DNA of 64,000 nt from Botryllus schlosseri (Eukaryota): positions 372,001 to 436,000 of the forward strand of contig CM119376.1 in NCBI GenBank assembly GCA_051294905.1, written 5' to 3'. Positions 2,508 to 64,000 of this stretch are shown piece after piece. A program made the translations under genes and the position numbers. Every line of letters begins with the position of its first letter. The stretch's first letter is position 1. The notes beneath the pieces were generated by a model, which saw only the letters and a program-made list of their open reading frames with translations, was not told where the DNA came from and searched no databases.

Positions 2508-3485
2508 CTACGTCTTTATCGGATGTGTCCGATTGTCCGATTGCTTGTTTTCTTCTACGTTATTTTCATTGGTGTTCTCATATTCTCCTTCCTCTTCCGG
2601 ATCAGAATCGGATAGGTTCAGCTCTTCAGCTACTTCTAGTATTTTTTGGAATATTTCGTTCTGATCATTTTGTTTCTCTTCCTGTCTTTCTGATTGAACA
2701 TCAGAGGACTGGTTCTTTGTTTGTTCTTGCTTTTTATTTGTTATTTCCCTGGCGCCTTCGATCGCTGGGAATTCTTCCTTTAATGTCTCACAATCGGTTC
2801 TATTGTCCCCTGTTTCTCTGCAGTGGCTACAGAACACTATCTTGCAGGCCGCAGCCAGGTGACCTGGATGACATTTGTGGCATTTCTTTTCTGCTATTGG
2901 CTCTTTCTCGATCGTTGGCGTGAATACCTTACAGGTTGCGCCGTCGATTCGGATAAAAGCCGGTAGCCTTCCAGGTAAGCATTCAGCTATGGCGACTGAT
3001 CTGAAGCCATTATGTAGGTTTGTGCCTCTGTGGTACATCTTTCGTATTCCTACGATGTTCCCAGCTTTGTACTGATCTATAGCTTTCGCTACTGTTTGAT
3101 TGTTTGCCTCAGAGGGCACCTCTCTGATGTTAACGTATGTCGGATGTTTTCTGGGCGCCTGTAGCAGGTATTTCTTTCCGTAAAAGTGGAATTCACCTCC
3201 TACTGCTAGTAGCGCGTTTTTGGACTCTTCGCTTACCATAGTTTGGTTGAAGGTTTCCACCATAATTAGGTTGAAGGTTTCTTGCCCTATCTGGAAAGCG
3301 GCTTCCAGGTTACCTCTATGCTCTCTCATCGTCGCTTGTTTATCAAATATGTCTATGACATCTTTGATGGTAATCGTTTCATCTCCTATCAGGTCGATTG
3401 AGAGTAGTCTACGACCGTGCATTCGGGGAAGTTCCTGAAGTTCTATCCTGTTTCCAGGTTCTTCAGTCTCAGATCCGCTGCACAA
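2508..3485 (-). CDS. E1 ORF1 (gag-like nucleic-acid-binding protein)
   Basis: 325-aa ORF with Tx1-type VNIREVP...NLHNGFRSV region and degenerate knuckles CHKCHPGHLAAAC and CSHCRETGDNRTDC. Confidence 0.8.
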   Translation of the reverse strand: MCSGSETEEPGNRIELQELPRMHGRRLLSIDLIGDETITIKDVIDIFDKQATMREHRGNLEAAFQIGQETFNLIMVETFNQTMVSEESKNALLAVGGEFHFYGKKYLLQAPRKHPTYVNIREVPSEANNQTVAKAIDQYKAGNIVGIRKMYHRGTNLHNGFRSVAIAECLPGRLPAFIRIDGATCKVFTPTIEKEPIAEKKCHKCHPGHLAAACKIVFCSHCRETGDNRTDCETLKEEFPAIEGAREITNKKQEQTKNQSSDVQSERQEEKQNDQNEIFQKILEVAEELNLSDSDPEEEGEYENTNENNVEENKQSDNRTHPIKT

Positions 3486-4712: not shown

Positions 4713-5599
4713 GGCCAGTTAATGATTTTTGAATATTGTATTGAAGTTATATATATATATATATCGACTTTCAATTAAATAAAAGGGCAAAAGAAAACAG
4801 GAAACAAAAGAACATCAAGATAACATTGAAGTTTGGTACCTCCAAGAAGCTCTTTAATGATTTTTGCTCATTGATTGAATCTGTCCTCTTTCAATCACTG
4901 TGACTACCTGAAGCAGATCACTTCTCTTTGCACTGCGTCGGTTTGGTTTGTGAACTATAATTACACTAATATCGCCAGTTATGAAATTATATTACTAAGC
5001 CTATACTACTTGATGTCGTCGGAAAGGGTCTAAGATTTCAACGGCTCGACACATATTTACCCTTTTTCTGCATGAGTTGTAGAAATGTGTTTTATCGTCT
5101 CTGACTATCAGGTGAGGTGCGACCTAGTACTAACACCCAAACAGAAATTCCTTAAACCGTCCTGTATACTTGTCCACTTGTTTTGAAATCATCCTGCTTT
5201 GCTTCAGAAAGTTCGTTTCTATACCAGTTTCATATAATGGAGAGTAAATGAAATCTCAATTACGAACTGCCAGCCGCACGCCCACCCATCGCTAAAACGT
5301 CTTTTAGTGGAACTATCTCGGATTATCACCGCACTGACGTATTATAGGCCTACACCGAATCAATTATTATACAAACGACTTGTTTTTATTAGTCTGATAC
5401 ACAGATTAACGAATCAAGAAAACCAGTAGAATGTATTTCGAGGCATTAGCGGACGCGTCTCCTCTGCAATACGTCCTTTTCTGTGGTAAAAGTAACTATA
5501 TATGAATAACTGAAATGTCAAACCTAATAATATTATACGAATATACCATTAAAATCTAAAAGCATGTTCCCGAATGGCTGACGATATTGACGGCAACAC

Positions 5600-16937: not shown

Positions 16938-16960
16938 TTGGCGCCTCCCTTTCCAAGGCC
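16938..16960 (-). other. H4: Histone H4 coding remnant, codons G9-K16 (GLGKGGAK)
   Basis: Minus strand reads GGC CTT GGA AAG GGA GGC GCC AA, exactly between the 3' end of E4 and the 5' end of E3. Confidence 0.75.
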
Positions 16961-19883
16961 TACATTTGTTAGGGGTTGCTACATCTCAAAATGTACCTGT
17001 CAGAGATATCTCTCTGGCCTGTAGCAGTTTGGGAGGTTGCTCTTTTTTCTGTTCTTTAGATTTCTTCCAGTACTTGGTCGAGAATTTCTTCCAGTACTTG
17101 GTCGAGAATTTCTTCCGCCCTCGGTTGGTGTTCTTGCCTTCTTCTTCGTCTCAGTCTTCTTGTACATGACCTCAAAAGCCAAATATGTGTTATTTGTTTA
17201 CCCTCGTGCTTTTTAAGGTTTCTCGCATCCCATGTGGTCTGTTTGAGCGTCGATATAATCTTGATGTAGGCAAGGAGTTCGTCCTGTGTCATTGGAGTTG
17301 CTGGGTCCATGTTGATGATTTCTTGAAGGCCTGGCCGCGCTGCTGCTCGCCCCTTGACTTGATTCCATGCGTCTGTAAATACAAATATCATTGGTTTGAT
17401 CTTATCGAATACTGTTCGTGGTATTCGATATCTGTTTCGCATAGCGGGCAGTCTCTTGTTCTGGAGGCCAGTGTCGCTTGCAGTTTTTCATTTGTGGGGA
17501 GCAGTCTATTGGCTATGTCCCAATTTAGCTTCCTCTGCTCGTGCGTGAGGTAGGTGTTATCGATTTTGTTTTTCCCATACCTTCTCATGGAGAGAGCTAG
17601 CTGGTTTTCCAGCCTTCTCTCCTATTCTGATTCCGGTTTTGCTTCTTTTTGCAGATATTTCAGCGCTGGCTTCATGAACGCGAGGTCAGTCATGGTCGGA
17701 ATGTCGATCAAGTCCAGTCCACCCATTCCCTTGGTCTGTATAAGCTTCTCGTATTCAATTTGCCGTCGAGTCCCATCACGAATGCTGCCGTTTCTATTTC
17801 AAGCTTCTTCTTAATGAGGGCCGGCATTCTGTCCTTCGATGCTGTGTATGTAAAAAGAGGCAAAATGTTAGTGCAAATTATGCTGACCTTTTCATGCTGA
17901 CCTTTTCATGCCTTTTTAAGTATAGGGCTCTCCACTCATTGAGTTTGTCGACTGTTTTGTTGATCGCTTCAGTCCATGGCTCCGTTTCAGCTTTTTCCTC
18001 GTGTGCTATGATATGGCCGAGAGCAGTTAGCTTGTTCGTCCATTGGAATTTCGTGGTGGGCTGTCTCCATCTTTTCCGTTCGAACGTTATGCCCTTCGTT
18101 TTCTCCCGATTGATCTGTAGCCCGATCGCTTTACCAAATTCCTCTATTATATCGATTGCTTTGTTGCTGTCCGCCTCTTTTGCAAGCGTCACGGTGATGT
18201 CATCCGCGTATGAGGGTGTGGCTATTTTTTCTTTCATGCCAGCGAGCTTGTAGCCTGTAATGGAGCTGTTAAGCTGCCGCAAGAGCGTGTCCGTTACTAT
18301 AGTAAATAAATACATAGAGATAGGATCGCCCTGTTTAATACCTTCCCGTATTTTGATGCTTTCACCAATTGAGCCGCCTATGGATATGGTTGCTTCCCCA
18401 TTTTCGTATATTGCTCGGTAAAAACTCCGGAAGTTGTCGCCCAGGCCAGCCGCTTTCAGCGCTTGATGTAGGAATTGGTGGTCGATTGTGTCGTACGCCT
18501 TGCGAAAGTCTATTGAGATGATGGCCCCTTGATTTCGCTCTCGCATTTCTGCCGCAATTTCCCTTAAAACAAGGTTGAAATTGTCCATGTTATTCGGTGG
18601 GTTTACGTACTGATGGTGGTGCGTAATTTGTGGCAGGGCCTTTTTCAATCTGTTCGTCAGAATTTTGCTGATGATCTTGTAATCCACATTGAGCAGAGTG
18701 ATTGGGCGGTAGTTTTTCATTTCCTTATCGTCACCTTTCTTGTGGATGGTCTTTATTATTCCAATTGCAAATTTGCTGGTGGCGGTGTGCTGTTTTGCTG
18801 GTGGCGGTGTGCTGTAAGTAGAGTTCGTTGAAAACCAAGGTTAGATTTTTCGCTATTAGGTCTAGAGCTTGTATGTAGAACTCGGCACCTATGCCGTCTT
18901 TCCCGGGTGTTTGATTTCGTTTTTGCTGGAGTATGGCTAGTCTCACTTCATCTTCCGTGATGGGCCGATCTATCTCTTCCCGCTGGCTTTGCGTTAGCCG
19001 TCCAGCTTGCGATCTGAAAAAGGAGTCAGCAATATTGGGATCTGAGCTTTTCTTACTGTATAGATTTTCGTAGTATTCTTCTGCAGTCTTTCGGATCTGT
19101 GGTGATGTCGCCGGCCGCGTTTCTGATTGCACTGATTGAGGCTACCTCCTGCCGTTTCTTGATGGCCTCGCATAGCATGTATGGTTTTTGGCTTAGCGTT
19201 TCTTCCGCCTCGGCTTTTGCTTCCTTCTGGAGTTTTTGGATGTTCCCCTCCTTGTTTTTCCATATTTTCTTTTTCACCCTTCTGTATTCAGGCAAAAGAG
19301 CAATGTTACAGAGAACACGGTTTCTTACTGTTTTTAATTCTTTATCATCTTCTTTTTGTCGCTTCTTTTGTTGCCTTCGCTCCCTTGCGACATATTGAAT
19401 GTTCAGATGCTTCAGCCTTCGCTTCGGTTTCCCACGCTTTCCATTTGTTTTCTAGCTCCCTCCGGAACGTCTCTTGCTTGTAAATGTCGGTGTTGTTTTT
19501 CCAGATCGTTCGTTTCGTATCGTGTTGCTGTCCCATCTTCACTGTGGCAACGGTCGCGTCATGATCTGTAAAGGCACAAGGGACATTACAGTTTACCGTT
19601 TGGATGCTTGGCGTGGTGTAGATTCTGTCGAGCCGTGATTTGCCTGCGTTGTAAAAGAAGGTGTATTCCTTTTGGTTACCGTTGGCTTTTCTAAACGTAT
19701 CCTCGACCCCCATTGTCTTCATTGCGTTCGCGTGGCGGTTAGCTTCTTCTCTTCTCTGGTCGACGGGTTGCCGATCGAGTTCACAGGAATCCACGCCGTT
19801 GAAGTCTCCCGCTATGATTTAGTGTTTTGTACCCCTCGCCCTTGTGGCAAGCTGTCGCAGCTGCATTCTTCTTTTGAACCTGT

Positions 19884-20306
19884 TGTTTTGACGAGTCATG
19901 TTTTAGTTACTGTCCTTTATTTTCATTCCGTTATTCTCCTCGACAGCTCCATGAATATTCTACTCGACAACTCCTAATTGTTTTGTTTCATTTAATGATT
20001 GGTTGATTGAATTGTTGCATCGTCCGTTTTCGTTTACCTTTATATTGCTCTGTTGCTGCTATTTCTTTCTCCATTCAACTGTTATCGGACGAGCAAGCAA
20101 TCTTGCGAATCTCGCCATTTAACGTATCAATATTCTGAACAAGCTATTCCGTATTGTATGTTTTGGACTACTTGTATTTGAAACAGAAGAGATTTGAGAT
20201 ACGCAACGCTTGCTTAGTACCAAGATTGCCAGATTTAGTGTGCAGCAGACAGGATCCCGACACCTGATAAAGCGCCACTCATTGATTTCAGTGCCGCGTC
20301 GGAACA
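19884..20306 (+). repeat. 5' LTR of BEL/Pao element
   Basis: tgttttgacgag...gcgtcggaaca, repeated at 22499-22921. Confidence 0.95.
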
Positions 20307-20323
20307 ATTCGCAAGATTGCTTG
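20307..20323 (+). promoter_or_regulatory. Putative self-priming primer-binding site
   Basis: attcgcaagattgcttg starts at the first base after the 5' LTR, lacks TGG, and is the exact reverse complement of LTR bases 20094-20110. Confidence 0.7.
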
Positions 20324-20471
20324 TTAAAGCCGATATCTTCGAGACGCTCTTCGATTCAGGCGCCGCATGGTATTACTCTATATTCAAGACTCTGCTGCGC
20401 TACGAAGATCGATCGACTCTGCTTGGCACTAAATCTGCTACATTTACATAGTTGTTGTATTCAATTGAACG

Positions 20472-22451
20472 ATGTCGTTTGTGAAGTCTCCATCGGAATC
20501 TCCCAAGTCTCCAACCTTGGCACCGACTTGGAAGCCATTAGCTAAGATGACGGTCGACGATTTACGACCCGAATTACAAGAACTTGGCGAAGCTACAAGT
20601 GGGAGCGAAGCTGTATTGACGGACCGATTAGGGAAAATCCTAGATTCCGACAAACCTTCACAAAAGAAAGAACCAAAGCCCTCTCCATTGAGCACCACCG
20701 AGAGTACATCATCTGAACTGGTTATGCTTTTTCAGATGATGAAGCATCAGCTAGATCTCGATCGGCAGCAGCAGCAATTAGATCGCGAAGCTTCTGACCG
20801 TAAGTTTCAGTTGCAGCTCGAGGAGATCAAGCAGAAGCACGCTCAAGACCGTGAAGAATCCGAAAGACGATTCAGACTGCAATTAGAAGAAATTCGACAG
20901 CAGTCCGATAACCATTCATCGGCAAGCAGGGGACATTCACGTCTACACGAGGTTGTTATAAAGAAGTTCAGGCGCATGAATGCTGACCTCTTAGAGTCTT
21001 TGCAAGCTCTGGAGAAGAAACACGCACATTCCACCTCCGTCGAAGAAATTAAGGTCTTCATACGGTCGGTAGAAATATCAATGACCGATCTCAAGGCATT
21101 CGTGGATTCAAAAGTCGACCAGCTTGACGATGGTGATTTCAAGACCGAAATCATTGATGGCATGAGAAGATCAAAAGAAATTTATTTTGTACATATTCCT
21201 CTTGCCAAATCCAAGTCTTCATCGCTGAAAGCTGCCGAAGAAGCGGAAAAAGCCGCTGGATCCCTCCCGAGTGGAATAGTGCCGCCTACATTCAATGGCG
21301 ATATTTTGACTTTTCCTGCATTTTGGGAGTCGTTCGAGCCATTGGTTCACAAAAATCCAAAGGTCAGTCCATTTTACAAAATCTCGTATTTAAAGGCAGC
21401 TCTTAAAGGTTCGTCATCCGGCCTTCTCAATGGTTTCCCCTCGGCGGCAGTGAATTATGAGCCTGCAGTAGAAGCCGTTCTTAAAAGGTACGGAAAGAAG
21501 CAAGCGATCGTGAGAAATCACATCGAAGACTTACTACAAGGTGAGAAAGTAGAATTTAAGATCGACAAAGTCAGACAACTTCTCGATGCCGCTACTGCTA
21601 AAAGGGCCATTTTATCGCAGTATGACGTCTCTTGGGACCAACTCTTTACACAGGTACTAGAGTCCCAGTTGCCTGGTACGTTGCATGAGCGTTGGATCAG
21701 AAAAACTAGCCCCTTGATCGAAGCCGATAAGATTCCTGATTCTGATCTCCTGTTTGAGTTTCTAAGAACCGAGTTGGCGACGATGGAATCGTTGCGTAAG
21801 TCGCAGAATGGGCGTTGCGCTGTTGACGTACGTGAAAAGCCCCCACATAAAGATGAGCTGGTTAGTGTTGGTACCGATAAACCTGACAATGCATTTTCTG
21901 CCCAGTCTCTCGTGATTCAATCCGTCCAGCTATCATGCACCTACTGCTCAAAACCTCATTTATTGAAAGATTGTTTTAAATTTCTGAAATTAAATCCCGC
22001 CCAGCGATTGGCTGACTTGGTTATGAAGCCTGGTAAAGTGTGTTTTAGATGCTTATCCCCGAAAGGACACAAACACCACCCGAAACACTTTCATCAATGC
22101 AAGGAGCGTTGTACCGTCACTGGTTGTGGGAAAACCCACCACAAATTGTTACACGTTTCTGCGGAGCCATCGATCGGTTCCAAGTGTATGGTAACAACTA
22201 TTGACGGTTCCACCTCTGCATTGCGGGATTCAAATTCAAACGCATTATTGCCTACTGCGTCGGGACGTATCAACCACAATGGTGATGGTAAACCGGTTAG
22301 AATCGCGTTTGACTCATTTTCCCAGAAGAGCTTTGTAACTCGTGATCTAGCTGATTCATTGAAGCTATCACCGATTAAAAGCGATTGTCTCGGCATTAGC
22401 GGGTTCGGCGGTAATTCTAAATCTATTCGTTCGTCTTTTGAAGTTGGGTAG
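20472..22451 (+). CDS. gag: BEL/Pao Gag with N-terminal SAP-like motif, capsid-like (DUF1759-type) region, Cys/His knuckles and truncated aspartic protease
   Basis: Uninterrupted 659 aa: MTVDDLRPELQELGEATSGSEAVLTDRL; PPTFNGDILTFPAFWESF; CTYCSKPHLLKDC, CFRCLSPKGH, CTVTGCGKTHHKLLH; RIAFDSFSQKSFVT...ISGFGG. Confidence 0.9.
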   Translation: MSFVKSPSESPKSPTLAPTWKPLAKMTVDDLRPELQELGEATSGSEAVLTDRLGKILDSDKPSQKKEPKPSPLSTTESTSSELVMLFQMMKHQLDLDRQQQQLDREASDRKFQLQLEEIKQKHAQDREESERRFRLQLEEIRQQSDNHSSASRGHSRLHEVVIKKFRRMNADLLESLQALEKKHAHSTSVEEIKVFIRSVEISMTDLKAFVDSKVDQLDDGDFKTEIIDGMRRSKEIYFVHIPLAKSKSSSLKAAEEAEKAAGSLPSGIVPPTFNGDILTFPAFWESFEPLVHKNPKVSPFYKISYLKAALKGSSSGLLNGFPSAAVNYEPAVEAVLKRYGKKQAIVRNHIEDLLQGEKVEFKIDKVRQLLDAATAKRAILSQYDVSWDQLFTQVLESQLPGTLHERWIRKTSPLIEADKIPDSDLLFEFLRTELATMESLRKSQNGRCAVDVREKPPHKDELVSVGTDKPDNAFSAQSLVIQSVQLSCTYCSKPHLLKDCFKFLKLNPAQRLADLVMKPGKVCFRCLSPKGHKHHPKHFHQCKERCTVTGCGKTHHKLLHVSAEPSIGSKCMVTTIDGSTSALRDSNSNALLPTASGRINHNGDGKPVRIAFDSFSQKSFVTRDLADSLKLSPIKSDCLGISGFGGNSKSIRSSFEVG

Positions 22452-22498
22452 ATTATGAAAGAGTCTGTTGACCGATCATAGTCGGTCAAGTGGGGGAG

Positions 22499-22921
22499 TG
22501 TTTTGACGAGTCATGTTTTAGTTACTGTCCTTTATTTTCATTCCGTTATTCTCCTCGACAGCTCCATGAATATTCTACTCGACAACTCCTAATTGTTTTG
22601 TTTCATTTAATGATTGGTTGATTGAATTGTTGCATCGTCCGTTTTCGTTTACCTTTATATTGCTCTGTTGCTGCTATTTCTTTCTCCATTCAACTGTTAT
22701 CGGACGAGCAAGCAATCTTGCGAATCTCGCCATTTAACGTATCAATATTCTGAACAAGCTATTCCGTATTGTATGTTTTGGACTACTTGTATTTGAAACA
22801 GAAGAGATTTGAGATACGCAACGCTTGCTTAGTACCAAGATTGCCAGATTTAGTGTGCAGCAGACAGGATCCCGACACCTGATAAAGCGCCACTCATTGA
22901 TTTCAGTGCCGCGTCGGAACA
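22499..22921 (+). repeat. 3' LTR of BEL/Pao element
   Basis: Follows the PPT; followed by TSD cctgt. Confidence 0.95.
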
Positions 22922-23025
22922 CCTGTTGTTATGCCCATAGTATGAGGTTATATCTATTTTCTGGGCACCTACTTGCACTCTTAGCTGTATCATTCTCCCC
23001 TCCGTGTCATTCGTTACGTTCAGTG

Positions 23026-23859
23026 TGTGGCAGCCGTGCTCTATACTGCCCCTTACGTCAGTTGTAGTATTATCGCATCGTGCTTTAACTCCCTCTTTAG
23101 CTTCTGGCCGCTTCGGCGGACAGACGTATTATAAAGTCTCTGCAGCAGTTGTTGAATCGTGTGTGATCAACTACAGACGGGGGTCTGTTACAATGGCGAG
23201 CACGCTAAAAGCGTTACTTCATTAATTTGGCTGCAAGTCTGAAGATTTCTGGACAGTAACGGTATGCTGAAAGTTGGCGGAAATTCGAATACGGAATTGG
23301 CTGTCTGAACCGATTAAAGAAGCAGTATTGCATCGATGTGAGAAGTTTGAAGACTTGACTGGTTGCTTCACTTCGTAATAACTGTTTCACTGGCGGAACT
23401 GATGTGAGCGCACGTGGAGGGATGGAGCTTGTGACTCTCCCGGCCCGATGTTATGAAGAGGGGATGGAGCATGTGACTCTCCCGGTGATGTGGCGCGGCG
23501 TTGTTAGGGTTTTAGTTTAGGGAATTGTTCATTAATGTTAGTTTAGGGTTAGTGTTCTGCTAATGTGATACGGTCATGCGGGTGTTTGTGATTTTGTTGA
23601 TGATTTTGGACTTGTCGTTTTGATGTTGCTGTTTTTTATTGTATTTTGTGAGAGTGCTTTTATAGGCACTTCTCAAGTTTGGTGGGGAATAGTGTGGCAG
23701 CTGTGCTCTATACTGCCCCTTACGTCAGCTGTAGTATTATCGCATCGTGCTTTAACTTCCTCTTTAGCTTCTGGCCGCTTCGGCGGACAGACGTATTATC
23801 AAGTCTCTGCAGCAGTTGTTGAATCGTGTGTGATCAACTACAGACGGGGGTCTGTTACA
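23026..23859 (+). mobile_element. TRIM-like miniature LTR retrotransposon (non-coding)
   Basis: 167-bp LTRs at 23026-23192 and 23693-23859 (TGTGGCAG...CTGTTACA, 4 differences); PBS TGGCGAGC at 23194; PPT ggtggggaatag; 4-bp TSD agtg. Confidence 0.85.
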
Positions 23860-26800
23860 AGTGTACGAATTGCTTTTTTATTCCTTGCGCTGAGCAGAAT
23901 TGCGGTTCCCGCTGTGACGTGGTCTTGTGAGTTGCAATGTGACTCTCCCGGCCATTCTTTTGCCCAACTATCTATCCTCTTTTTCTAGTGTAGAGTGCGT
24001 TTCCTGCAGGCCCGTGATATTTGCACCTGTCTTTTTAATAAAGTCATATATTACTTGGCGTTTCCGCCTGTCCCCCATCCCGTTGACGTTAAGCGTCAAG
24101 ATCCTAAATTCCCCATTAGCCATTCCCTATCTATGGTACCTCACTAGTTATCTTTTCTTTTTGCTTTTGGCTTCCTACATATTCGGCACTTCTTGTATAG
24201 CCTTGCCGTCGCTTCGTTAAACAGCGCTCCGCAGCAGTCGGTGATTATACACGCCCTGTTGCATATCCCGCAGCTGATGGAGTGTCCTCGTTTTAGCGCT
24301 TCTCCCGTGATAATTAGGACTTCTTTCTCATCGCAGCATGACTGTATAAATTGATGTTCAATATTACAGATCATACATGTGCATACCTTGGATTCTGCTG
24401 TGTAGGATGTGCTGTGTATGATGTAGGGTGATTCCGAGTTTTCAAGAATTTTAAATTTAATTTTCTTAGCTATTTTCAGTTCCGAGTTGAATTTTCTTGT
24501 TTATGTAGAATATTTCCATATTCTATTCTAGGTACTTAACTAACTATATTCGAGTTTCTATAAAATTCCTATATGTTATGGATTCGAAATTCCGTCTATA
24601 TATATTGGCTTTCCTGGCATTTATGGTGACTGGTCAAATTTGGGTGAAATTCTCCTAACTCTGGTATCGTATTTGGCCGGGTTTTGGGGAGGGAATGGGG
24701 GGGGGTAGAGGGGTCTGGGCGATTGGGTTGGTTGTTTGGGTGGGGTAGGGGAAATTGTTTATTCATCAAAAGTGCGGCTTAATAAAGTGTTATACATCTA
24801 AATCGACGTGCAAAAGTGAAGTGAGGATACAGAATAAATTAATTAACAATTTATACGTCATGAGTAAGTAGAAATATATCCGGTTATGGATTCGTACATC
24901 TCAATATATACGGCATATAGGCTGTATATCGCGTATATAAGTATACAGGTATTGGTTTCGCGTACGTTAATTTGATAGATTAATGTGGTACGTAGGTGTT
25001 TTCAAAAGGCAATGCGAATACAGTAATGATTCATAATTTTGCGTAATGCATATTAATCTATCGCGCGCTTGCGTATCATCGATCGGTCTTTCGCGTTTCT
25101 TCTGAGTCTTCTCCTCTTCTGTCGGCTTTCATGATATCATCAACGGTACGGTATCGCGCAGAGTTGTATTAATGCGGATATTAAACGGGAGAGCTTATGC
25201 TTATTGCATACGCATAATACCTATCGCGCGCCGCATGCGTTACGAGAGTTCGCGTTCTCTTCGTCATTTATCCGGTGTCCCAGGATCGTCGCCTCGTGGG
25301 TTGTAGTTTGGTTCTTATTCGATTGATGTTCTCGTTGACGTCATCGGCATATTCCTTATGAATATCAAGCGCTTGTTTCCATTCCCACATATGTAGTTTC
25401 ATCTGCATGAAGGTGGGGAGTACCGTCGTTCTATGCGGTCCATCGTATTGGTTTTTCATGATCTGCCCTGGTGTCGCGTTGATGTCGGTTCGGAATTCAT
25501 CTTCGAGGTCAGACCTGATGATATAAAACAGTTTTTTGTATATTGTACATTCCTCGAAGATGTGCTGCATATTGTCGGTTTTGTTTTTGCAAAATTTTCA
25601 GTCATTTTTTAGTTGCTGTGCGTTTCGGGTCGTCCAGCCGGCGTCGATCTTTCTCGCCCCTGAAAAATAGTCTTCCGAGTTGATACGATATGATATAACT
25701 CTCTGTCTGTTATTAATGTAGTGTTTTATATCATTTTCGTACAACCATATCGTTTTCCACGCAGCTGCATCCTGGTCGCCATAATTTGTTTTCTTATTGA
25801 GGAGTTGTTGGTAGGTCTCCCGTTGGCTTAGTTCTTCTGGGGGGGGGGGTATCGTCGAGTTGTTGCAGCGATTCATAGGCTCTTTTTTCCTCCAGCCAGT
25901 TCTCGGTTGGTTTGTATCTGTGGGGATATGAATTATTGTAGAGCTTGTGAGTTATTGCTCTCACCTTGGTGCCCAAGTTGTAAATCGCATCCGCATGCCA
26001 GGCCTCGGTTGGTGCGTCGATTTTCGCAAGTTCTTGCATCCTTTTGGTTTTCCTTGATGCAATGGTAGATTCAATATCAAGAAACGCGATGCCTTCATAT
26101 TCGATAGGTTTTATGAGTGTCGCTCTTGATTTTTGCTCCAGTTTTTCAGGGTGCCACAGGATCCCGTAGATGGCCCTTTCCATCTGCTTTAGGTATTCGC
26201 TGGTGACCTGAAGGTTGAGGTATGCATAAGTTATTTTGCTTATAATGTAGGATTTGATTGCTTTGATTTTTCCGATCCATGTAAGTTTCTTTGACTTTAT
26301 AAGGCCCGCACTCTCCTTTATATCCTTGATCAGTGTCTCGTGGTTTTTCTCTAGGTCATTTTCGCCGTGATATTTTCCCAATATCTTTATTGTTTTTGTC
26401 ATCATATTTGCATAAATCGAGTTTTCAAGCATCGTTCTAGATCTCTGGTTGAGGGGAATGATTCCGGTTTTTTGCAAGTTTATATCCTGTCCTGTTACTT
26501 GATAATGGGTGCGATATTCGCTCAGTACTTCTTTGGCGGCGTTAATTGACCCCAAATATAGGGTCACGTCGTCCGCGAATTGGTCAATCTTTTGGGTAAT
26601 GGCCCCGATTTTTAGGCCTTTAATTTTGTCGTTTGCAGCGATTCGTTTTGACAAGGGGTCTGCGCTTATCGCATATAGGGACATGCTGTGTGGGCACCCC
26701 TGCCGAATTCCCCTGGTACAGTTGATTTTACCAATTTCGAGCCCATTTACTTCTATAACGGCGGTCGGTCTATCATAGATCTTTTTGATAGCATTCAGCG

Positions 26801-27206
26801 TTGACCTTGCAAGGGGAAGTCTCTCCAAGATTGATATGAGCATCTCTTGGCTTTTTCGGCGTCTATAGCCATTATATAGGCTTCACTGTTCTTTTCGCTA
26901 TAGTGCCTTTTGATTGAATCAATGTTATTGTGGATGGTATTCATAAACCTTCCAGGTAGTCCGGCCTTTTGGGCTTGGCTAATGTGATCGTTCACCTCGT
27001 TCGTTAGTCTTACATTCAATATTTTGGCCATAATTTTATAATCGGTATTCAAGATCGAAAGGGGTCGCCAATTCTCAATTTTAGATTTTTCTTTTTCTTT
27101 ATGAATTAGGATGGTTTTCGCTGAATTCCAGCTTTCCGGCATATGGCCAAACATTATGGCGTTGTTAATAAGGAGTGTAAGCGTCCTACCGATTTGTTTC
27201 CAGAAA

Positions 27207-28550
27207 TTAACATAGAATTCGAACGTGAGGCCGTCTCTTCCTGGTTTTTTTTTCCTTCTTCACACTCTTGAGGGTTTGTAGCACCTCTTCTTGGTCAATC
27301 GGACTCGTTGTTGTTGTTGTTTGGTCTGGGCTTGCCGTCGCGTAGTATTCTGCGAGGTAATCGGCTTGATTGGCTTGATTGCCTTGCGCGCCTCTCGTCC
27401 ATAGTTCTGTATAGAAGGTTTTGATTCTGTTAGCTATATCGTCCTTGCTTTCGCTTACCGTCCCGTCTGGCATTTGTAGTTTTTTTTTTATCTCAACTCT
27501 TTTCTTCCTCTTTTTGAACTGATCCCAGAATTGACTCGTCGTATGCTGTTCTCCCTCAAAATCATCAAGTTTTGTTAGTACTCTTAACTTTCCTTTAATT
27601 TGTTCGTACTTGAAGTGAGGGTCTGGGTTTTGGGCTCTCTTGATTTGATAGCTTTTGCTTGTTTTGGCTATTCTTTTCTTGAGAGCATCCCACCACTCGG
27701 CAGGGGATTCATAGTTCTCAAGGTTTGGCTCCTCACTGCGTATGACATTTGTTATTATATCCCTGTATATCGGGTCCTTAAGAATGTCATTGTTGCATTT
27801 CCAGTTGCCTCTATTCCATCTTATTTCTTTTTCGAATGTAAGTGTCACTGTTGGACTTAGATGGTCTGCCACATTGTTATTTTCGATTTTAGCTTGCTTT
27901 ATTTGGTCTAGTATCTCTTTTGTTACATATATTCGGTCAATTCTGGATTTTCCGTGATTGCTCTTAAAAGTATACATCTTTGCTTTTGGATGTTTACATC
28001 GGTACGTATCTATTAGCTCAACGTCATTTTGTATCTTACTGAAGAGCTTAATGTCTCTTCGTGATTCGATTCTCTCTTTCGAGTCGGTGTCCATCGGGTC
28101 AGTTACGAAGTTGAAATCTCCGCCTAATATTATTGGAATGTCCGTGTTATCTAATTCCGATGCTATTTGGTTCAGAAACCGAATTCTTTCATTTCTTACT
28201 TGATTCGCACTCCCAGAGGGGCCATAAATGTTAAAAACCGCTATTGGGCATTGTTCAATTTGTATATAAATACATTGGGCACGGTAATCTTGGATAACGA
28301 AGTCCCGTAGGACCTTACCTTGTATCTGGTTTTTTATCATTATTGCCGTGCCGTCGTATCTTCTACGGTCGTTGGCGGCGTTCGGGTAGATAATAAATCC
28401 AATCCGTTTGCTCCATTCATATATTGCTTTTAGATCCAGTTTAGGCACTTCTTGTATTAGTAATATATCCATATTGGAGGCATAAATATATTGTTCGAGT
28501 TCGCCCAATTTTCGCAATAACCCGTTTACGTTGATTGATGCGATTTTCAT
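27207..28550 (-). CDS. E5 ORF2 apurinic-like endonuclease and linker (447-aa uninterrupted piece)
   Basis: INVNG, QE, NIYGP, GGDFN, SRIDRIY, ADH, RGNWKCNN motifs. Confidence 0.85.
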   Translation of the reverse strand: MKIASINVNGLLRKLGELEQYIYASNMDILLIQEVPKLDLKAIYEWSKRIGFIIYPNAANDRRRYDGTAIMIKNQIQGKVLRDFVIQDYRAQCIYIQIEQCPIAVFNIYGPSGSANQVRNERIRFLNQIASELDNTDIPIILGGDFNFVTDPMDTDSKERIESRRDIKLFSKIQNDVELIDTYRCKHPKAKMYTFKSNHGKSRIDRIYVTKEILDQIKQAKIENNNVADHLSPTVTLTFEKEIRWNRGNWKCNNDILKDPIYRDIITNVIRSEEPNLENYESPAEWWDALKKRIAKTSKSYQIKRAQNPDPHFKYEQIKGKLRVLTKLDDFEGEQHTTSQFWDQFKKRKKRVEIKKKLQMPDGTVSESKDDIANRIKTFYTELWTRGAQGNQANQADYLAEYYATASPDQTTTTTSPIDQEEVLQTLKSVKKEKKTRKRRPHVRILC

Positions 28551-29942
28551 CTACTTATGGCTACAGTCGATACCGAAGCATCGCTATCAGGCTACAGTCG
28601 ATACCGAAGCATCGCTATCAGAGTCTGTTGATTTGTCGTTTTTCTGTTTCTTTCGGATATCGTTTCCGTGCTGCTGTTGCTATCTCTTTGTCTCTTGTTC
28701 GGTTCGTAAGTAAGTGAGTCTGGTTCTATTATAGTTTCATTATGCTGGTCGAACGGTTCGTGTTCCGGGTCTGAGTTCGAATGTGGGCCAGATGTCCCTT
28801 GCCTGTCTTCAAGGGGTGGCGAGGCTAGCGAGTCTTCAGCAATTTTAATCTGGTCAGCTGCCCTTTTGATTTTCTTCTCCTGCCAGCAGTTTAACTTTCC
28901 TGCTTTTTGGCAGTGTTTGCGGTTTCCCCGATGTTTTGGGTAGTTTATCTGCTTTGGGTTATGCCTTGCTTTCGCGGTTGCGTAGCACTGTGATGTTTTC
29001 GTACCAACCGGTAAGTACCTCGGAGTTATGCTTATTTCTGTCGGGGCTTGGTAGCTGCTGTAGGCGTAGACTGCTCGTGACTGACAGTCTATTTCGATGG
29101 GATTGGGTTGATTGCGGCGTTGGTGGTGGCTGCCGGTCTGCTTCTGGCTCTGGTTTTTCACTTGTTCGGCACGCTCGTTTTGTTTCGGGCAGTTTCTTGC
29201 AACGTGTTTTTCGTCGTTGCAAAGATAGCATTTTCGTCTATATATGTCGTCCGCCGTACGTATTTGGCACGAATAGCCATCAATGTATACGTATCCCGGC
29301 ATTTTTCCTTCACGAAGGCCTCGACCCAAATGTTAGTTCTTCCGTTGTATATTCTAGTGTTTTTGCGGTACACTCTTGTCATTGCCACTACTTTTCCAAA
29401 GCCTTGGCTATCGATATCTCTTGCAATCGATTGTTGCTCCGTTTCTGTTGGAATACCGGTTGCAATTAGGTGTGTTGCTGGCGGTCTTGGTAGTTCGAGG
29501 CGGATATATTTGAAACTGTGCCCCTCAAGGCTCTGTTTTTGGATTTTGTTGTAGAGCGCATTTCTGGTTTGTGCGCCTTGTGCGTCCTTGAAGAAGGATA
29601 GGACGTACATCCCTCGTCGCATCTCCCATAGGGATTCTATCTTGTTTATGATATACTGTTTGGCGATCTCGTTGTCACATAGGTCTGCCCATACCTCTTC
29701 ATATTCGATATTTTCTGGGACCTTGAGAAACAGGGATCTCGGTCTGTGATGCTGAATAGGTGGTCTCGGGGTAGTTCTTTTCAGAGCTGTTGCGTATCCT
29801 GGTTCAGCGTTTGTATCCATATTTTGTTCCGTTTGCGTATATCCAACATGCGGGCGACGCCCGGTTAAATTCATATTTTGCTCGCTTTGCATATATCCAA
29901 CAGGTGGGCGACGCCCAAGTTCTGGCTGCTCTGAGTCTAACT

Positions 29943-31944
29943 CAGTGATTCTCAAGCGCGGCCCCCAGATAGCCTTCTTGCGGCCCCCGCGCCCCCAAAG
30001 TATATCAAGAAATCGATTTATGACAAAAATAAAATTTATATTTATAAAATACTCTTGCTTGGCTTGACCTCTGTGGTTTTTAATTATAGAATTGCAGGAA
30101 AGTTGTGAGTATGGACTGCTAACGTTATGTCACTGCTATTTCAATGCAATGTGCCCTAACTTTCCACTTGAACGAGAAGTAGCTATAGATATAAATCCAA
30201 GGAAAATCTCTCCCTCGTGGTCGCTTGACTAAAAAAGAAAAAGAGGCACAACTCCCGGAAAATACAGTTTTTCTTTCACATTAACAGGTGGTTGTCTGAA
30301 AAAATAAACTTCCCGGTCTAGCTCCGAAATAGCCGCCGTAGCGCTCCTACAGTGCTGACTTAATGTATATCAGTCGAATTTGGCCCTATATGTAACCAAA
30401 ATCATCAAAAAATGAGACAAAATCTCAAAATATAATACATTTGGGCGTCCTCCGAGGACACTTTTATAAAAATCAAAAAAGAGGACAAATCATCTTAAAA
30501 GAGGACGTATGGTAACCCTATTATAACTAGATGTGCAACACGTGACTCACGGTTGAATACGCCGCCGAGATGCATACTGTTTAGTCGGCTGAAAGCAGCA
30601 TAATTGGTAGTCCTATATTCAGGGCCGTAACTGCCGCACCCCAAACGCCCCAATTGAGGGGGGCCGAGATCGAAGGGGGCCCAAAATTATTTCGTGAATT
30701 AGCATAAATTTTAGCAAGTATTTTTTGAAAATTTGTGCAACTTCTTCAAAAATTTTTCGCGCTATGCTCGATTTCAATTCGCCGCATATCTTGATTATTG
30801 GGTACTCTTCCCCAAGAAAAAATACGCAAGATTTATAGAAATGGGCATATCAGCGTTGGCCATGACCGCACCACAACGCACCATGACATATAAAGTTTTA
30901 GGCCATGTAACATGTGACTCCAAGAAGTGTGTCAGAACGATCGGCAGCGAGAAAGCCTTGGCCGTAAACGACTGCTTTTATGCTGACCAAAAATTCCGAA
31001 ATACCAAAAACTTCGTTATATATACCAAATACATTTAGGTTTATTTGTTCATATAGCCGCCTAATGACTGGCGCCGAATGTTCTTGTCTTGGCAATCTGA
31101 ACCTCACAAGACAAATACCATCCCGCAGGAAAGAAAATTATATGCCAGTGAAGAAATACCAATCTGAAATCGTGTGATCTTCCAGTTTAGTAGGTTTGGG
31201 CAATTCTACATTTTTTGATATAGCAGACAGGATGTCACAAAATAACATCGCCATGTGAAGAAGTCAGACCTAGGGGTTTGCCCGCCCGAAGGTCTGCAGT
31301 TTCAAAGACACCTCTCACTCAGCTCTACCGGTAAATCGGATTACGTGGGCAAAGAGGACAACCATGCAATTCCCGATCTTATCATGAATTATCGAAATAT
31401 TCGCGCGTAGCGCTGTCTCAATAAACAGTACAACTTTAATTTCGTGGCAAAAGCGAACAACGTCATGCGAGGTCAGTTTATCACCCTATGGGAGCCCGGG
31501 GTCCTGACGAAGTGCCGTTACGTTCCTGCCAACGGGTATACCCTCGGATATGTTTAATTCCTATTGAGGGGGCCTATACCTTTACAAACACACCTCACTC
31601 AGCTCTACCGGTAAATCAGATTACGCGAACAGAGACAAGATGAAAATTGATAGCAATACATGCAATTCCCGATCATATTGACCAATTCAGTCATGAAACT
31701 AAAGAAATTTCTCGCGCTTTGCGCGTTTAGACGAGAAAAGCTGATTCACTCAACGGACACCCAATGCAGCAGATAAGTAGCGGTAAACAGTGTACAGTTT
31801 TGAAATCTCGCCACGGCAATAAAACTACTCAGAAATAGCCATGACTGTTTGGGTCCGTTTCATAGCCGTAGTTTTCGTGCGGCCCCGACCGTACTCTGAA
31901 ATTCTAAATTTGGCCCTCACACCGAAAAAGTTTGGGAACCACTG
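29943..31944. mobile_element. Composite non-autonomous hAT (Charlie-like) element with nested MITE pieces
   Basis: TIR CAGTGATTCTCAA/TTGGGAACCACTG; 8-bp TSD gtctaact; E5 ORF1 frame continuous across it; internal block shared with 49378-51063. Confidence 0.85.
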
Positions 31945-31984
31945 GTCTAACTGATTCAGTTCGCGCGCATTTCGAGAGAAACCA

Positions 31985-32090
31985 TTTACCGCCATTTCCC
32001 CGTCCAGACATTTTGATAATTACAGTTAATTGTTTTATTCCCTGCAACGAATGGTTTTCGCTAGTCTTTACGGCAGAATTATTTTGAAAC
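31985..32090 (-). pseudogene. H4: Histone H4 gene 5' remnant (promoter/cap region, 5' UTR, Met to K8) fused to the 5' end of E5
   Basis: ATG TCT GGA CGG GGA AAT GGC GGT AAA = MSGRGNGGK (H4 is MSGRGKGGK) at 32011-31985; CCATTCG, matching the PyCATTCPu histone cap-site consensus, at 32054-32048, about 43 nt upstream of the ATG. Confidence 0.72.
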
Positions 32091-32095
32091 AGAAA

Positions 32096-32106
32096 TTTCC
32101 CAGGCC
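32096..32106 (-). other. H4: Histone H4 coding remnant, codons G9-K12, directly after the E6 poly(A) tail
   Basis: Minus strand AAAAAAAA GGC CTG GGA AA = (K) G L G K; short, so supported mainly by agreement with the other two junctions. Confidence 0.6.
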
Positions 32107-34670
32107 TTTTTTTTAATCGTGGTTGGCCTCAGTCAACCATGGTTTATTTTTTTTATCGTGGTTGGCCTCAGTCAACCATAGTTTATTCAAAATATAATCT
32201 CAATACAAGTTATTTAAAAATTGCGTGAAAAAAGCACAAACACAAATACACAAAATCATCATTCTTGCCGGATTTCCATCGCCATGTTCGTCATCATCGT
32301 TCAACTCGTCTCGTTCGTCACCATCCATCGTCGTCAATTTGTCATCGTGTGTCCGTCGTCATCAGTAGTCCAGGTATTTTCTTCTTCGACCTTTTCAATC
32401 AAGTCGATTCTGTCGTCGTATTTCTTGAGAATTTCTTTTACAATCTTTTCCGTCCAGTGTTGTCGGTTAATCATTGAGACGTTTTCGATATCCCATTTTT
32501 GTTTTGTTCTCAGGATCGCTTTCTTAAATATCATGATAAGTATTATTTCGTTCTTATTTTTTTCTTTTGACTGTAATGACTGTAAAACAGTTCTTCTCCT
32601 CTCGGTAATTTTATACCCTTCTCTCTTTCCATCTTGCATAGGACTTCTTGCGAGAAGGGACATTTTGTGAAGACGTGTTCTATATCGTCTTCATCTTTCC
32701 CGCAAAACTTGCAAGACGTTATATCATTTCTTTTCCATAGATTTCTTCTTTTTTCTTTGCCGAATATATATCCTTTGTTATTTAGTCTGTAATTAATTAT
32801 CTTCTCTTTGTTGGTAAGTATGTTATTACGTCCTCTCTCCTCTCCTTGTAATACCTTCCACTTCTTCGTTTGACCGAATGGTGATTTTTTTCTCCACACT
32901 TTCTGTACATCTCATGTACAGGTTTTTGAAAGTGGCGGCCATCCATTGTTCGGTTGACCATCTTATTTTCTTCGTGTCTTCAACTATTCTTCACCATTCT
33001 TGATCTGGACTATCATTATGCGGCATGCTGTTTGCGTACAGTCCCGCTTTGATGGCTTTAATTTTGGTTCCTAATTGATATAAGGCTTCTTGATGCCAGA
33101 ATTCGCATGTGTTTTCTAATTCCGACAGGGCCTTGATTTTTATCAATTGGCACGTGTATACAATCGATTTTGAGAATGGCATGGCCAGTCCCCCTTCGTG
33201 TTTCCTCTTTATAAGGAGATTCCTAGCTATTAATTCCATCTTTTCTGGATAATACATTAACTGGAAGAAACTCCTCTCTATTTTTTTAATGTTTTCATTG
33301 TTAGGTCTATGCACTGGATAATACATGAACTGGAAGAAACTCCTCTCTATTTTTTTAATGTTTTCATTGTTAGGTCTATGCACTCTAGCAGTGTAGAGTA
33401 TCTGAGACGTTGCAAGGCTTTTCAGGATTTGTATTTTTCCTATCCAAGTCAGCCGTCTTGTTTTGTACATATTTAATATTTTATCGATCTTATCTATTCT
33501 TTCTTTCCATGACTCTTCGTTTTCATCTTTCCCAAACCTATATCCCAATATCTTTATACTATTTTTTGTGAAATTCTCGAATACTGAGTTTTTGAGCTCA
33601 ATTCCTGCCGCTCTTGTTAGTGGCAGTAGTTGAGTTTTTTCTTCGTTAATGCTTTGTCCCGTTGCTTTCTCAAAATCTTTCAAGTGTTTCATAATTTTAG
33701 TGAGTTTTTCGATTGCGTGAACGTCGTTAAATCGTCCTCGTATTGCTGGATTTTTAAAACTTGTTGGCCTAATCTAATTCCTCTAATTTCTTCGTCTTTT
33801 ATTATTTTCTTTGCTAATGGTTCGGTTGCCATTGCATAGAGCATCATGGGGCAGCCTTGCTTAATGCCTCTTTATTTTCACCGAGTTAGTTTTTGCTCCG
33901 TTGATTTGGATTCGACTTCTAGCGTTATTATATGTATGTTTGATATAATTGTAGAAGTTTTCTCCCAAATCCCAGGATTTTATTAGCGATAATGGGTAGT
34001 CATGATTGACTCTATCAAACGCTTTCTCCTGGTCTACGCTGCCTATCACTGCCGGTATCTCCTTCTTTCTGGAATAATCTATTGCAGATTTTAGATTAAT
34101 TGCCGCATCAAAAATGCTTCTCTTGTCGATGCTACATTTTTTAGTGTTATCTATGATATCCGGTAGTATGCTTTTCATTCTACTGGTTAGTATTTTAGAT
34201 AATATTTTGTAATCCGTATTTAATAGTGTTATCGGTCGGTAATTTTTATGTGCCTAGGATTTCCTTTCTTGTAAATTAGCTTTACTAATCCCTCTTCCAT
34301 GTTTTGCAGGTCGAATTGAAGCTGTATGCGTTGTTCATTACTTCGGTAACTTCTTTTCTTATCATGTTCCAATATGTTTTCTAGAATTCAATGGAGATCC
34401 CGTCGGTACCAGGGGATCCATTATTTTTCATCGATTTAATCACGAGCAGAATTTCATCTTCGTTATCGTGTAGTTCAGATGTGCTCGTTTTTCTTCGCTA
34501 ATTTCTATACCTTCAATTTCATTTTTGAAGGTTTCTTGTATTCTTATATCAATATTGGAGGTTTTCTCCCACAACTCATTGTAGAATTCTTCAACCTCAT
34601 CAATTATTTCTTTTTTCTCGATTAGTAGCTCTCCGTTTATATTTGTTGTTGTTGGCCTTTCCTCGAGGTA
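32107..34670 (-). mobile_element. Tx1 element E6 (intact 3' tail to linker; 5' part missing)
   Basis: Poly(A) at 32107-32114 with duplicated tail; CKFC...EHVFTKC C-terminus; RLTWIGK; QQYEDD; DQEKAFD. Confidence 0.85.
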
Positions 34671-61559: not shown

Positions 61560-64000
61560 CTTAGCCTAAGAAGAAGTTCTAACCTAGTTACGGCACAAGT
61601 ACAACACGTTGATTCTAATCTTTACGGTAAATCTAGACTACAATAGCCGCAGCGGCTCAGTCGACGGGTTACATTTTGGTGATTAATGGCCTACCCACTT
61701 TGGGTTGCGCATAGCGTTGGGCATAGGTTTTCTTGCTTGTTTCAGCCTCGCTTTAGTTCATCACATTTTGGCTTCTATTTTTTTTGATCTCCTCCAGGAT
61801 GGTATCAAGGGTTTTGTCGATCTCTTCATTCCCTTCGAGTTTTTGTCTCATCCTTAGCCGTTGTTTGATTGATTTGGAGATTCAGTGCCACCCGTATTTC
61901 GTTCTCCCCGTTTTTGTGTTGCTTCTGGCCTTCCAAACTGATTGTTTGTAAATGGTAATTAATTTGATCAGTGCTGCATTCAAGTTTGGGGTCAAGGTCC
62001 CGGCTGGGTCCATGTTTATCATCGTTCCGAAGTTTGCCTTATGGTATTCTTCCAGGCTTTCGCTAAATTCTCCAGTGCTTTTTGCGTTTCATCACATTTG
62101 AGGAAGAGATGCACTTCGTGCTCTAAGTCCTTTCCACAGAGTTCGCATTCTATTTGAGTTTGAAGGCCTCGTGTATGAAGTCTCATGTTCGGTTTGAGAA
62201 GTTCGTGTGTTATCAACCAGTTGAAGTCCCTTTGTTCTTTCATCGGGATTGTGTGGTTGACGTTTTGCCAGTTTGGCCCCCTCCTTTCCTCAATTTCTCT
62301 AGTGTGGTTTTTCGCTATCGAAGCGTTGTAAAGAATTTTGTTCCCTTTCGTTTTGATGTGGGTTCTTTCAACGCCTATTTCATTCATGACCTTGTTTATC
62401 TCCTTCCAATGGGCCTGGGGTTGTAACGTGTGGGGTTTGACGTTTGATATTCTCTGGGTTACATATCGTTTGAGTGTTAAGGCTAACTGGTGGTCAAGTC
62501 TTCCATCCCAGTCTCCCTTATTTTCCTTTTGGAGTCCCTTCAAGTATTGGATTGCGGGTTTGGCATAAATGATATCCGTGATAGTCGGGATGTCGACTAC
62601 CCCTCTTCCCCCCCTTTCCTCTGCTGGGACTATTTTTTTATAATCCGTTTTTCCCCTCTCAAACAGGAGCAGGTTTACACTCTCTCTCAACTCTCGTTTT
62701 ATTCGTGGTGGCATCCTTGTTGTGGCTGCTGGGTAGGTGAACAGAGGCAAGATATTTGTTCTTACTAGTGCGATGCGACTGTTCCTTTCCAGTTTGAGGT
62801 TATTGATCTCCACTGCAAGGTCATTGGCAGCCTCCAGGGCTTCTTTCCACTGGCTGTTGGTTTGTACTAGTTGCTTACTAAGAGGGTGCCCCAGTGTTTT
62901 TACCTGCTCTACCCATTTGATCTCATTCTGGACTGGTGGGGGTGTGCATTCATTGAAGTCGATTCCCCTGCTTTTGTCCTTGTTGATTTTTAAGCCACTC
63001 GCTTCCCCAAAGGCTTTTAGTATTTTTAGAGCCTCGCCGGACTCGCGTTGGGCGTCTAGTGTGATGGTGACATCGTCAGCATATGCTGGAGTAGTAATCG
63101 GTGTTCTCATGCCCGAGATCTTGCAGCCCTTCAGTTTTATATTAAGCTTCTGCAGAAGTGCCTCAGTAGAAATGGTGAAGAGATACATTGATATGGGATA
63201 TCCCTGCTTAATGCGAATTTGTCGCCGATTCATGCTGTTTTTATTGCCCCGTGTAAGTATTCATGGCTCACCGAGTCGTAGGCCTTTTCAAAGTCTACTA
63301 AGATTATTGCACGCCTCTGCTTTCCTCTCATCTCGGCTGTGATTTCTCTGAGCAGCAAGTTGATTTGGCCGATGGTTTTTGGCGGGTTGACGTGCTGGTG
63401 CTCGTGTGTTATGGTGGGCAATGCCTATGCTTCAGCCGATTTGTGAGTATTTTACTGAGGATTTTGTAATCCGTGTTTAGTAGACAGATCGGTCTGTAAT
63501 TTTCTAACTCCTTAGAGTCCCCTTTTTTGTGTATTATTTTCAGCACTGCCGTGCCGAGGTTTGCTGTTGTGCTCTGGGCTTCGTAAATTTCGTTGTAGAC
63601 TTCCGTTAGCTCCCTCTTCATTAGGTCAAGGTTAACCATATATAGCTCGGAACTTAGCCCGTCCTCGCCTGGGTTTTTTTTTTTTCTGATGTAACACAGC
63701 CACTCTGAGCTCGTCTGTTTTGATCTCCCGCTCTATAAGGTCGTGCTGTGCGGTCGAAAGTGCGTTCTGGTGGTGTTCGAAGAAGTTCTCTGCCATGTCT
63801 GTGCCCCCGTCGGGCTTATTTAATTGGTCTATTGTGGCGACTTTCCTTCTGTTTTGGATTTTCTTGCAAAGAAGACATGGGTTGTTGTCTATCGCCGTTT
63901 CTTCTTCTGCTTTCGCCTCCCTTCTTAGTTTCTCTAAGCTTTCCCTTTTATGCTTCCGAAGGGTTCTTTTAGCCCTTTGGTATTGCAATGTGGAGGTGTT
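61560..64000 (-). mobile_element. Tx1 element E12 (3' UTR, C-terminus, RT, linker; continues beyond the window)
   Basis: NYRPICLLN, DFEKAYD, IKQGYPIS, PAYADD, CELC...VHLFLKC. Confidence 0.85.

Follow-up and report, generated by a model that had tools for sequence, protein, structure and literature searches.

How does a histone H4 start codon come to stand directly in front of a LINE, and does the LINE depend on it? The question is raised by E5, a LINE copy on the minus strand of a 64,000-nt stretch of the Botryllus schlosseri assembly GCA_051294905.1 (contig CM119376.1, positions 372,001 to 436,000; hereafter the window, whose own numbering is used throughout). The original prediction had read E5 as an element without a 5' UTR of its own, fused to the cap site, 5' UTR and start codon of an H4 gene and possibly co-transcribed from the host promoter. 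The reading that we consider probable is that the clade to which E5 belongs integrates, in sense orientation, into the DNA encoding the H4 N-terminal tail, and that E5 itself is a dead copy with a leader of its own; the H4 start codon and its 5' flank would then precede E5 because the clade inserts into H4 tail DNA. The features of the locus and the junctions of its relatives are collected in Table 1.

Table 1. Features at and around the 5' end of E5 (positions in the window) and 5' junctions of E5 relatives (positions in the H4 coding sequence).
Feature	Position	Strand	Remark
Histone H4 start codon and codons S1-K8 (MSGRGNGGK), the stub	32011-31985	minus	K5 changed to N (AAT)
Second ATG, created by K5N	31995-31993	minus	in phase with E5 ORF1
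E5 leader, part 1: 32 nt and first AGTTAGAC copy	31984-31945	minus	
Non-autonomous hAT-type DNA transposon, 2,002 bp	31944-29943	minus	splits the E5 leader
E5 leader, part 2	29942-29821	minus	starts with second AGTTAGAC copy, 29942-29935
E5 ORF1, CCHC zinc-knuckle type	29892-28631	minus	frameshift near 29300-29180
E5 ORF2, AP endonuclease and reverse transcriptase	28550-25268	minus	at least 3 frameshifts
H4 nt 28-50 (G9-K16), 23 nt	16960-16938	minus	3' of the E4 3' end
84 nt upstream of the H4 ATG, putative H4 5' UTR and core promoter	32095-32012	minus	
TATA-like AAAATAAT	32085-32078	minus	inside the 84-nt stretch
Cap-like CCATTCG	32054-32048	minus	its A lies 41 nt before the H4 ATG
GGCCTGGGAAA, scrap of H4 nt 28-38 (G9-K12)	32106-32096	minus	directly behind the E6 A-run
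E6 3' end: 39-nt unit with 13-bp hairpin, two tandem copies, A8 run (32114-32107)	32185-32107	minus	
L006 (P0021), intact	junction after H4 nt 18		no leader; ORF1 in frame with H4 codons 1-6
L012 (P0023)	junction after H4 nt 18		leader 27 nt; in-frame TAG before the ORF1 ATG
L010 (P0024)	junction after H4 nt 21		leader 121 nt; H4 AUG gives MSGRGKGNF*
L002/L003 (P0002), intact	junction after H4 nt 8		leader 143 nt; H4 AUG gives MSGV*

On the minus strand the stub reads ATG TCT GGA CGG GGA AAT GGC GGT AAA, which occurs once in the window and in none of 100 shuffles (0/100), and E5 sequence sets in directly behind codon K8, that is, after H4 nt 27, in agreement with the junction as originally described. 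No H4 body follows the stub or lies anywhere else in the window, and a scan of the window for H4 and H3 tails by regular expression and 7-mers returned two H4 pieces only. The second of these, the 23-nt remnant behind E4, begins exactly where the stub ends (H4 nt 27|28), which makes the H4 identity of the stub secure; the identity is also backed by the H4 heads found in four relatives. A further match, at 62625, was rejected as a histone piece, being a chance match inside a reverse transcriptase coding region.

E5 is a dead, essentially full-length LINE copy of the AP-endonuclease type, dead because a nested insertion splits its leader and because ORF1 and ORF2 are frameshifted (at least four frameshifts in all). 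Its ORF2 shares 59-70% amino-acid identity with the intact ORF2 of L002, and its 3' end resembles the 3' UTR of L002 in weak colinear matches only. There is no H4 scrap in the boundary region between E5 and E4, the endonuclease of E4 starting near 24130.

The nested insertion has the ends CAGTGGTTCCCAA.../...GAGAATCACTG, with short terminal inverted repeats beginning CAGTG..., and lies between perfect copies of an 8-bp target-site duplication, AGTTAGAC, at 31952-31945 and 29942-29935. In duplication length and ends it is like hAT elements; unlike an autonomous hAT it carries no transposase, and its superfamily is set by duplication length and ends alone. The ends presumably resemble those of hAT-Charlie elements. 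Another copy, at 51073-49375 on the minus strand, is likewise flanked by a perfect 8-bp duplication (ACCTAGAG), and both copies (about 1.7-2.0 kb) sit in the 5' region of a LINE. With a summed depth in DNA runs thousands of times that of single-copy sequence, the hAT-type element is among the most abundant repeats of the genome.

For E5, the two sides of this insertion were translated separately and their codon phases then compared, no sequence being repaired, fused or turned into a consensus. The phase of both AGTTAGAC copies agrees (1 and 1), and because it does, the frame of the second ATG, at 31995, runs into ORF1, a continuity that holds only once the 2,002-bp insertion is read past. This ATG lies 16 nt past the H4 ATG, in another frame, and overlaps the AAT codon of the K5N change. 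Both an in-frame ATG at this change and a disagreement of phase between ORF1 and the H4 ATG had been described, and the codon phases bear out the two claims; the H4 AUG of E5 opens an ORF of about 65 codons that overlaps the ORF1 start. In the heads of the relatives the K5 codon is AAA or AAG, the K5N ATG being private to the E5 stub, and the in-phase ATG is probably a chance product of the stub's decay.

The claim that E5 lacks a 5' UTR of its own did not survive the comparison with its relatives. Behind K8, E5 can be aligned with the leaders of L001, L002 and L010, and in the aligned leaders the relatives' ORF1 starts at an ATG 121-143 nt past the H4 piece. The alignment centres on the palindromic GGGCGTNGCCC and on an TGGATATACG...AAATGGA block, which E5 has twice because of a 54-nt tandem duplication in its leader (29919-29866 / 29865-29812, 42 of 54 positions alike); the GGGCGTCGCCC motif also stands twice in this leader, at 29916-29906 and 29862-29852. 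Conserved in E5, L001, L002, L007, L010 and L011, the GGGCGTNGCCC motif translates as LGRRPP in E5 and, when the ORF1 frame is followed in L001 and L002, as LGVA; since the frames differ, what is conserved is the nucleotide sequence and not a peptide.

Candidate starts of E5 ORF1 lie at 29892 and 29820, which gives a leader of 82-154 nt between the junction and ORF1, the range arising from the 54-nt duplication. At 29892 the sequence ATG CAA AGC GAG encodes MQSE, with which P0001, the closest relative, also starts, and the codon aligned with the ORF1 ATG of the relatives is ACG in E5. Some 31 open codons are needed to lead from ATG 31995 to the 29892 start, for which the probability by chance, estimated as (61/64)^31, is about 0.2; being compatible with chance, the open frame back to the K5N ATG is judged incidental on this estimate. 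It is most likely, from the alignment, that E5 ORF1 began at an ATG within or after the leader, like that of its intact relatives.

Several further observations concern the leaders themselves. The palindromic form GGGC-N3-GCCC is kept in the leaders of six families while flanking leader sequence and frame differ, and it could be a promoter, a protein-binding element or a translation signal. In L001 (1-155) and L002 (42-173) the ORF1 frame is open through 44-51 leader codons, contains no ATG and has a register unlike that of E5; stop density is low in all leader frames, and these open frames may mean nothing. The Logan contig L004, polyadenylated and intact, is 64-70% identical in nucleotides to window positions 51557-46216 (the other hAT-bearing LINE) and has a leader of 280 nt with repeated GTCTAGAC palindromes, whose CGTCTAGACG also opens the L002 leader directly after the H4 piece.

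How general the H4 head is can be read from the relatives. A word search with ORF1 yielded two Logan proteins and a profile search 42, and a maximum-likelihood tree of ORF1, with six short or repetitive rows left out, placed E5 within an 11-row clade (support 96/95) of the composition P0021, P0023, P0019, (P0002,(P0001,E5)), (P0018,(P0024,P0028,(P0020,P0022))). Nucleotide identity between the Logan contigs and the window is only 64-72%, and they are therefore taken to be other families or to come from another species. The start of H4, in sense orientation, precedes every clade member whose 5' end is visible (5/5). The contigs of the remaining members break off within the leader; L011, a dead copy truncated at its 5' end, lies at a site other than H4. 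The 5' junctions fall after H4 nt 8, 18, 18, 21 and 27, and the 3' junctions at nt 7, about 13, 28 and 28, H4 being found at the 3' flanks of L002, L006, E4 and E6 (in L002/L003 as GGC AAG GGG GGA AAA G, the GKGGK of H4). Because the insertion position differs between families, the landing shows region specificity (nt 8 to 27) and not one exact insertion nucleotide. The same target flank in independent families and a constant sense orientation are the features of a target-specific element. Metagenome scans with the paralogue pattern and the ORF1 clade profile returned no further copies.

The most informative relative is L006, an ENA metagenome contig in which ORF1 (392 aa) and ORF2 (1,089 aa) are both intact. 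It sits in a divergent H3-H4 pair, with a perfect H3 on the opposite strand and an intergenic region of 236 nt, and true H4 sequence, beginning at nt 7, makes up the 150 nt of its 3' flank. Ahead of the conserved N-terminus of ORF1 there is no ATG but that of H4, and the ORF1 protein carries the H4 tail residues SGRGK. H4 nt 7-18 are present on both sides of the element (5167-5178 versus 624-635) with two synonymous differences, which in an apparently young element could mean either that the 5' copy came from element RNA or that gene conversion occurred among H4 copies.

A leader and an ORF1 ATG of their own are present in E5, L002, L010 and L012, and own start signals are absent only in L006. 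The two most basal branches, L006 and L012, share the nt-18 junction and have ORF1 in the H4 frame, a pattern that, on sequence grounds and with polarity left aside, fits an ancestral in-frame fusion of H4 and ORF1. The proposal that the element resides behind a host start codon and promoter is supported at the level of the lineage, given the five heads and the L006 fusion; what fails is the leaderless reading of E5. The reading frame across the junction of intact copies, which had been suggested as a check, gives a divided answer, being continuous in L006 but closed in L002 by a stop after the H4 piece; a stop follows the H4 piece directly in L010 as well.

The DNA upstream of the stub was examined for H4 character. 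The cap-type motif originally described, CCATTCG, is indeed present upstream of the H4 ATG; YCATTCR occurs 30 times in the window, both strands counted, and its presence on the correct strand 20-80 nt upstream is an event of about 1.4%, judged post hoc. In the 84-nt stretch, 7 nt (tatcaaaATGTC) recur in the H4 flank of L010, and a CCATCC stands at a similar distance before the H4 ATG of L006. The assignment of 32012-32095 as H4 upstream DNA is putative and draws on just these 7 nt and the CCAT(T/C)C shared with L006. By local alignment, the 84 nt showed no significant similarity to the leaders of any of the relatives or to the L006 intergenic region; the possibility that they are a relative's leader, raised by the AATTTCTG start common with L010, was rejected, the local alignment not exceeding that of shuffles. 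Elsewhere in the species there is a 51-nt copy about 86% like 32050-32100, at about 4x single-copy depth, like the E5 ORF1 region. This paralogous copy is transcribed, with 11 RNA reads covering 32065-32092, upstream of the proposed cap at CCATTCG, and these reads weigh against the preferred reading.

The upstream DNA ends at -95, where the 3' end of E6 and the scrap of H4 nt 28-38 begin. GGCCTGGGAAA exactly matches GGCCTKGGAAA, a pattern that is matched exactly at one further place in the window, the H4 remnant at 16960. The C-terminus of E6 ORF2 ends at 32334, and the 39-nt unit at the E6 3' end also contains AATAAA; its tandem arrangement may reflect repeated initiation of reverse transcription or slippage at the 3' stem-loop.

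At least ten LINE copies are present in the window, all on the minus strand, and only E5 is close to outside relatives. The elements at 3470 and 52007 share its ORF1 type; they are placed outside the clade and lack a histone head. The uniform orientation would be expected if new copies keep landing in stubs beside older ones. H4 nt 27|28 is used by three termini in 16938-32114, namely the 3' ends of E6 and E4 and the 5' end of E5; E4 spans about 24900-16961, interrupted near 20000-24000 by a BEL/Pao element, and E3 starts directly after H4 nt 50. The E5-type ORF1 is absent from both E4 and E3, and unrelated LINE families appear to share the landing zone.

Four other accounts of the H4 head were weighed against sense integration into H4 tail DNA. 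That E5 is truly leaderless, with ORF1 starting after K8 and translated from the K5N ATG or, ancestrally, from the H4 ATG, appears very unlikely to us. Its frame from ATG 31995 is open into ORF1, ACG occupies the position of the relatives' ORF1 ATG, and L006 shows that an in-frame H4-ORF1 fusion exists within the clade, but the region is homologous to non-coding leaders in which, in L001 and L002, the GGGCGTNGCCC motif is read in another frame, L002 and L010 stop directly after the H4 piece, the sequence at 29892 matches the MQSE start of P0001, and the openness of the upstream frame is compatible with chance. Scarcely credible is a template-switch chimera, in which the reverse transcriptase would have jumped from LINE RNA to H4 mRNA, as in U6-L1 retrocopies. 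Such a jump would leave a stretch of host RNA sequence in front of the LINE, as is seen here; yet the five junctions cluster within H4 nt 8-27, L006 interrupts a genuine H3-H4 pair whose remaining H4 sequence follows the element on its 3' side, and H4 nt 28-50 are present downstream in the window.

A possible but improbable account has the H4 head (the 84 nt and nt 1-27) carried in the retrotransposed RNA of a source copy driven by an H4 promoter, the cDNA with its H4 5' UTR having inserted into the remnant that starts at H4 nt 28 behind E6, with an 11-nt target duplication. The order behind the E6 3' end, H4 nt 28-38, the 84 nt and H4 nt 1-27, is as this account predicts; H4 nt 28-50 recurs behind E4 as a duplication would require, with 1 mismatch in 11; the 12-nt duplicated H4 stretch of L006 has a similar geometry; and the 51-nt copy (about 86% alike, about 4x depth) is transcribed, including a part upstream of CCATTCG. 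Yet the account needs both E5 and E4, with its BEL/Pao insertion, inside one duplicated site through successive events, 84 nt is long for an H4 5' UTR, the paralogous copy seems to share a GGAAA upstream of the 84 nt that is not predicted, and no second head of the E5 family could be read. Less likely than not, but a serious rival, is that the leader-bearing families, E5 included, have an internal promoter at GGGCGTNGCCC and use H4 merely as a safe multicopy landing site. The nucleotides of the motif are conserved across E5, L001, L002, L007, L010 and L011, a promoter at this motif could render that of H4 dispensable, and the upstream ORF opened by the H4 AUG would hinder translation of ORF1 in a co-transcript. 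Against this stand the sense orientation of every head and L006, which lacks both a leader and an element-encoded start codon ahead of the conserved N-terminus of ORF1.

Under the preferred reading, sense integration of the clade into H4 tail DNA, the endonuclease of the element would nick H4 tail-coding DNA, at 27|28 in the case of the E5 locus, and new copies would land behind the H4 promoter, which would drive their transcription. The H4 AUG would open a short upstream ORF in leader-bearing families (MSGV* in L002, MSGRGKGNF* in L010), and to reach ORF1 ribosomes would have to scan past this ORF or re-initiate, whereas in the L006 family the H4 AUG itself would start ORF1. E5 cannot work in this way because its leader is split by the hAT-type element, its ORFs carry frameshifts and E6 leaves it no more than 95 nt of upstream DNA. 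We infer co-transcription from the H4 promoter from the orientation of the heads and, most strongly, from the dependence of L006 on the H4 AUG. That the clade as a whole depends on H4, homing to tail DNA and using the replication-coupled H4 promoter together with either the H4 AUG or an upstream ORF and leader, we propose tentatively, with somewhat less than even confidence; if true, this would couple retrotransposition to S phase or to cleavage in the early embryo.

The expression data speak to the dead copy in the window. In RNA run X24, of which about 6% was read, the junction bin had a depth of 0.02-0.1 and E5 ORF1 a depth of 0; in this portion of the run no RNA reads spanned the E5 junction, no joint skipping the hAT-type element was listed, and most mapped reads belonged to the hAT repeat. 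An Rfam search found no ribozyme or known RNA in the window, nor in nine relatives at E <= 1.

We found no histone-targeting LINE in the literature searched; a mention of "histone genes" in PMC10946416 concerns 5S linkage. In the descriptions searched, target-specific LINEs occupy rRNA, snRNA, 5S and spliced-leader genes, telomeres, microsatellites and transposons. A lineage that inhabits a multicopy gene coding for protein, and in which one family takes both start codon and promoter from its host, would extend this list, would give a natural case of host capture at the level of translation and would predict transposition coupled to the cell cycle. The target of its endonuclease would be short, extremely conserved and present in nearly all eukaryotes. 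To this picture the E5 copy adds the junction at nt 27|28, where three termini of the window lie, and shows that the E5 sub-lineage has a leader.

Among known systems, R2 in 28S rDNA is likewise a site-restricted LINE that lies in sense orientation in a multicopy, highly transcribed host gene, and its expression is thought to depend on the host promoter. R2, however, has a restriction-like endonuclease and a single ORF, resides in a Pol I-transcribed RNA gene and has its 5' end freed by an HDV-like ribozyme, whereas the E5 clade has an AP-type endonuclease, two ORFs and a Pol II-transcribed, protein-coding target, shows no Rfam ribozyme match and includes one family, L006, that uses the host start codon.

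In domain content E5 fits the Tx1 clade (AP endonuclease and reverse transcriptase in ORF2, CCHC motifs in ORF1), a combination not exclusive to Tx1, and its nearest named match is a fish "LINE-1 reverse transcriptase-like" protein at 25% identity. Tx1-clade LINEs target U2 snRNA genes, microsatellites, DNA transposons and LTR elements, some families carry 5' heads derived from the target gene, and reliance on a transcribed target, as in R2, has been discussed as their logic (PMC4494074). Keno in U2, Kibi and Koshi in microsatellites and Tx1-Mar in Mariner, some with heads derived from U1 or U2, share with E5 the AP endonuclease and a preference for repeated targets; unlike those of the E5 clade, the Tx1 targets described in PMC4494074 include no histone or other protein-coding gene. 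Host-derived sequence at the 5' end of a LINE is also known from L1 5' transductions and chimeric retrocopies, but these L1 chimeras are sporadic and lie at arbitrary places, whereas in the E5 clade the same gene, the same strand and the same 20-nt region recur in five families.
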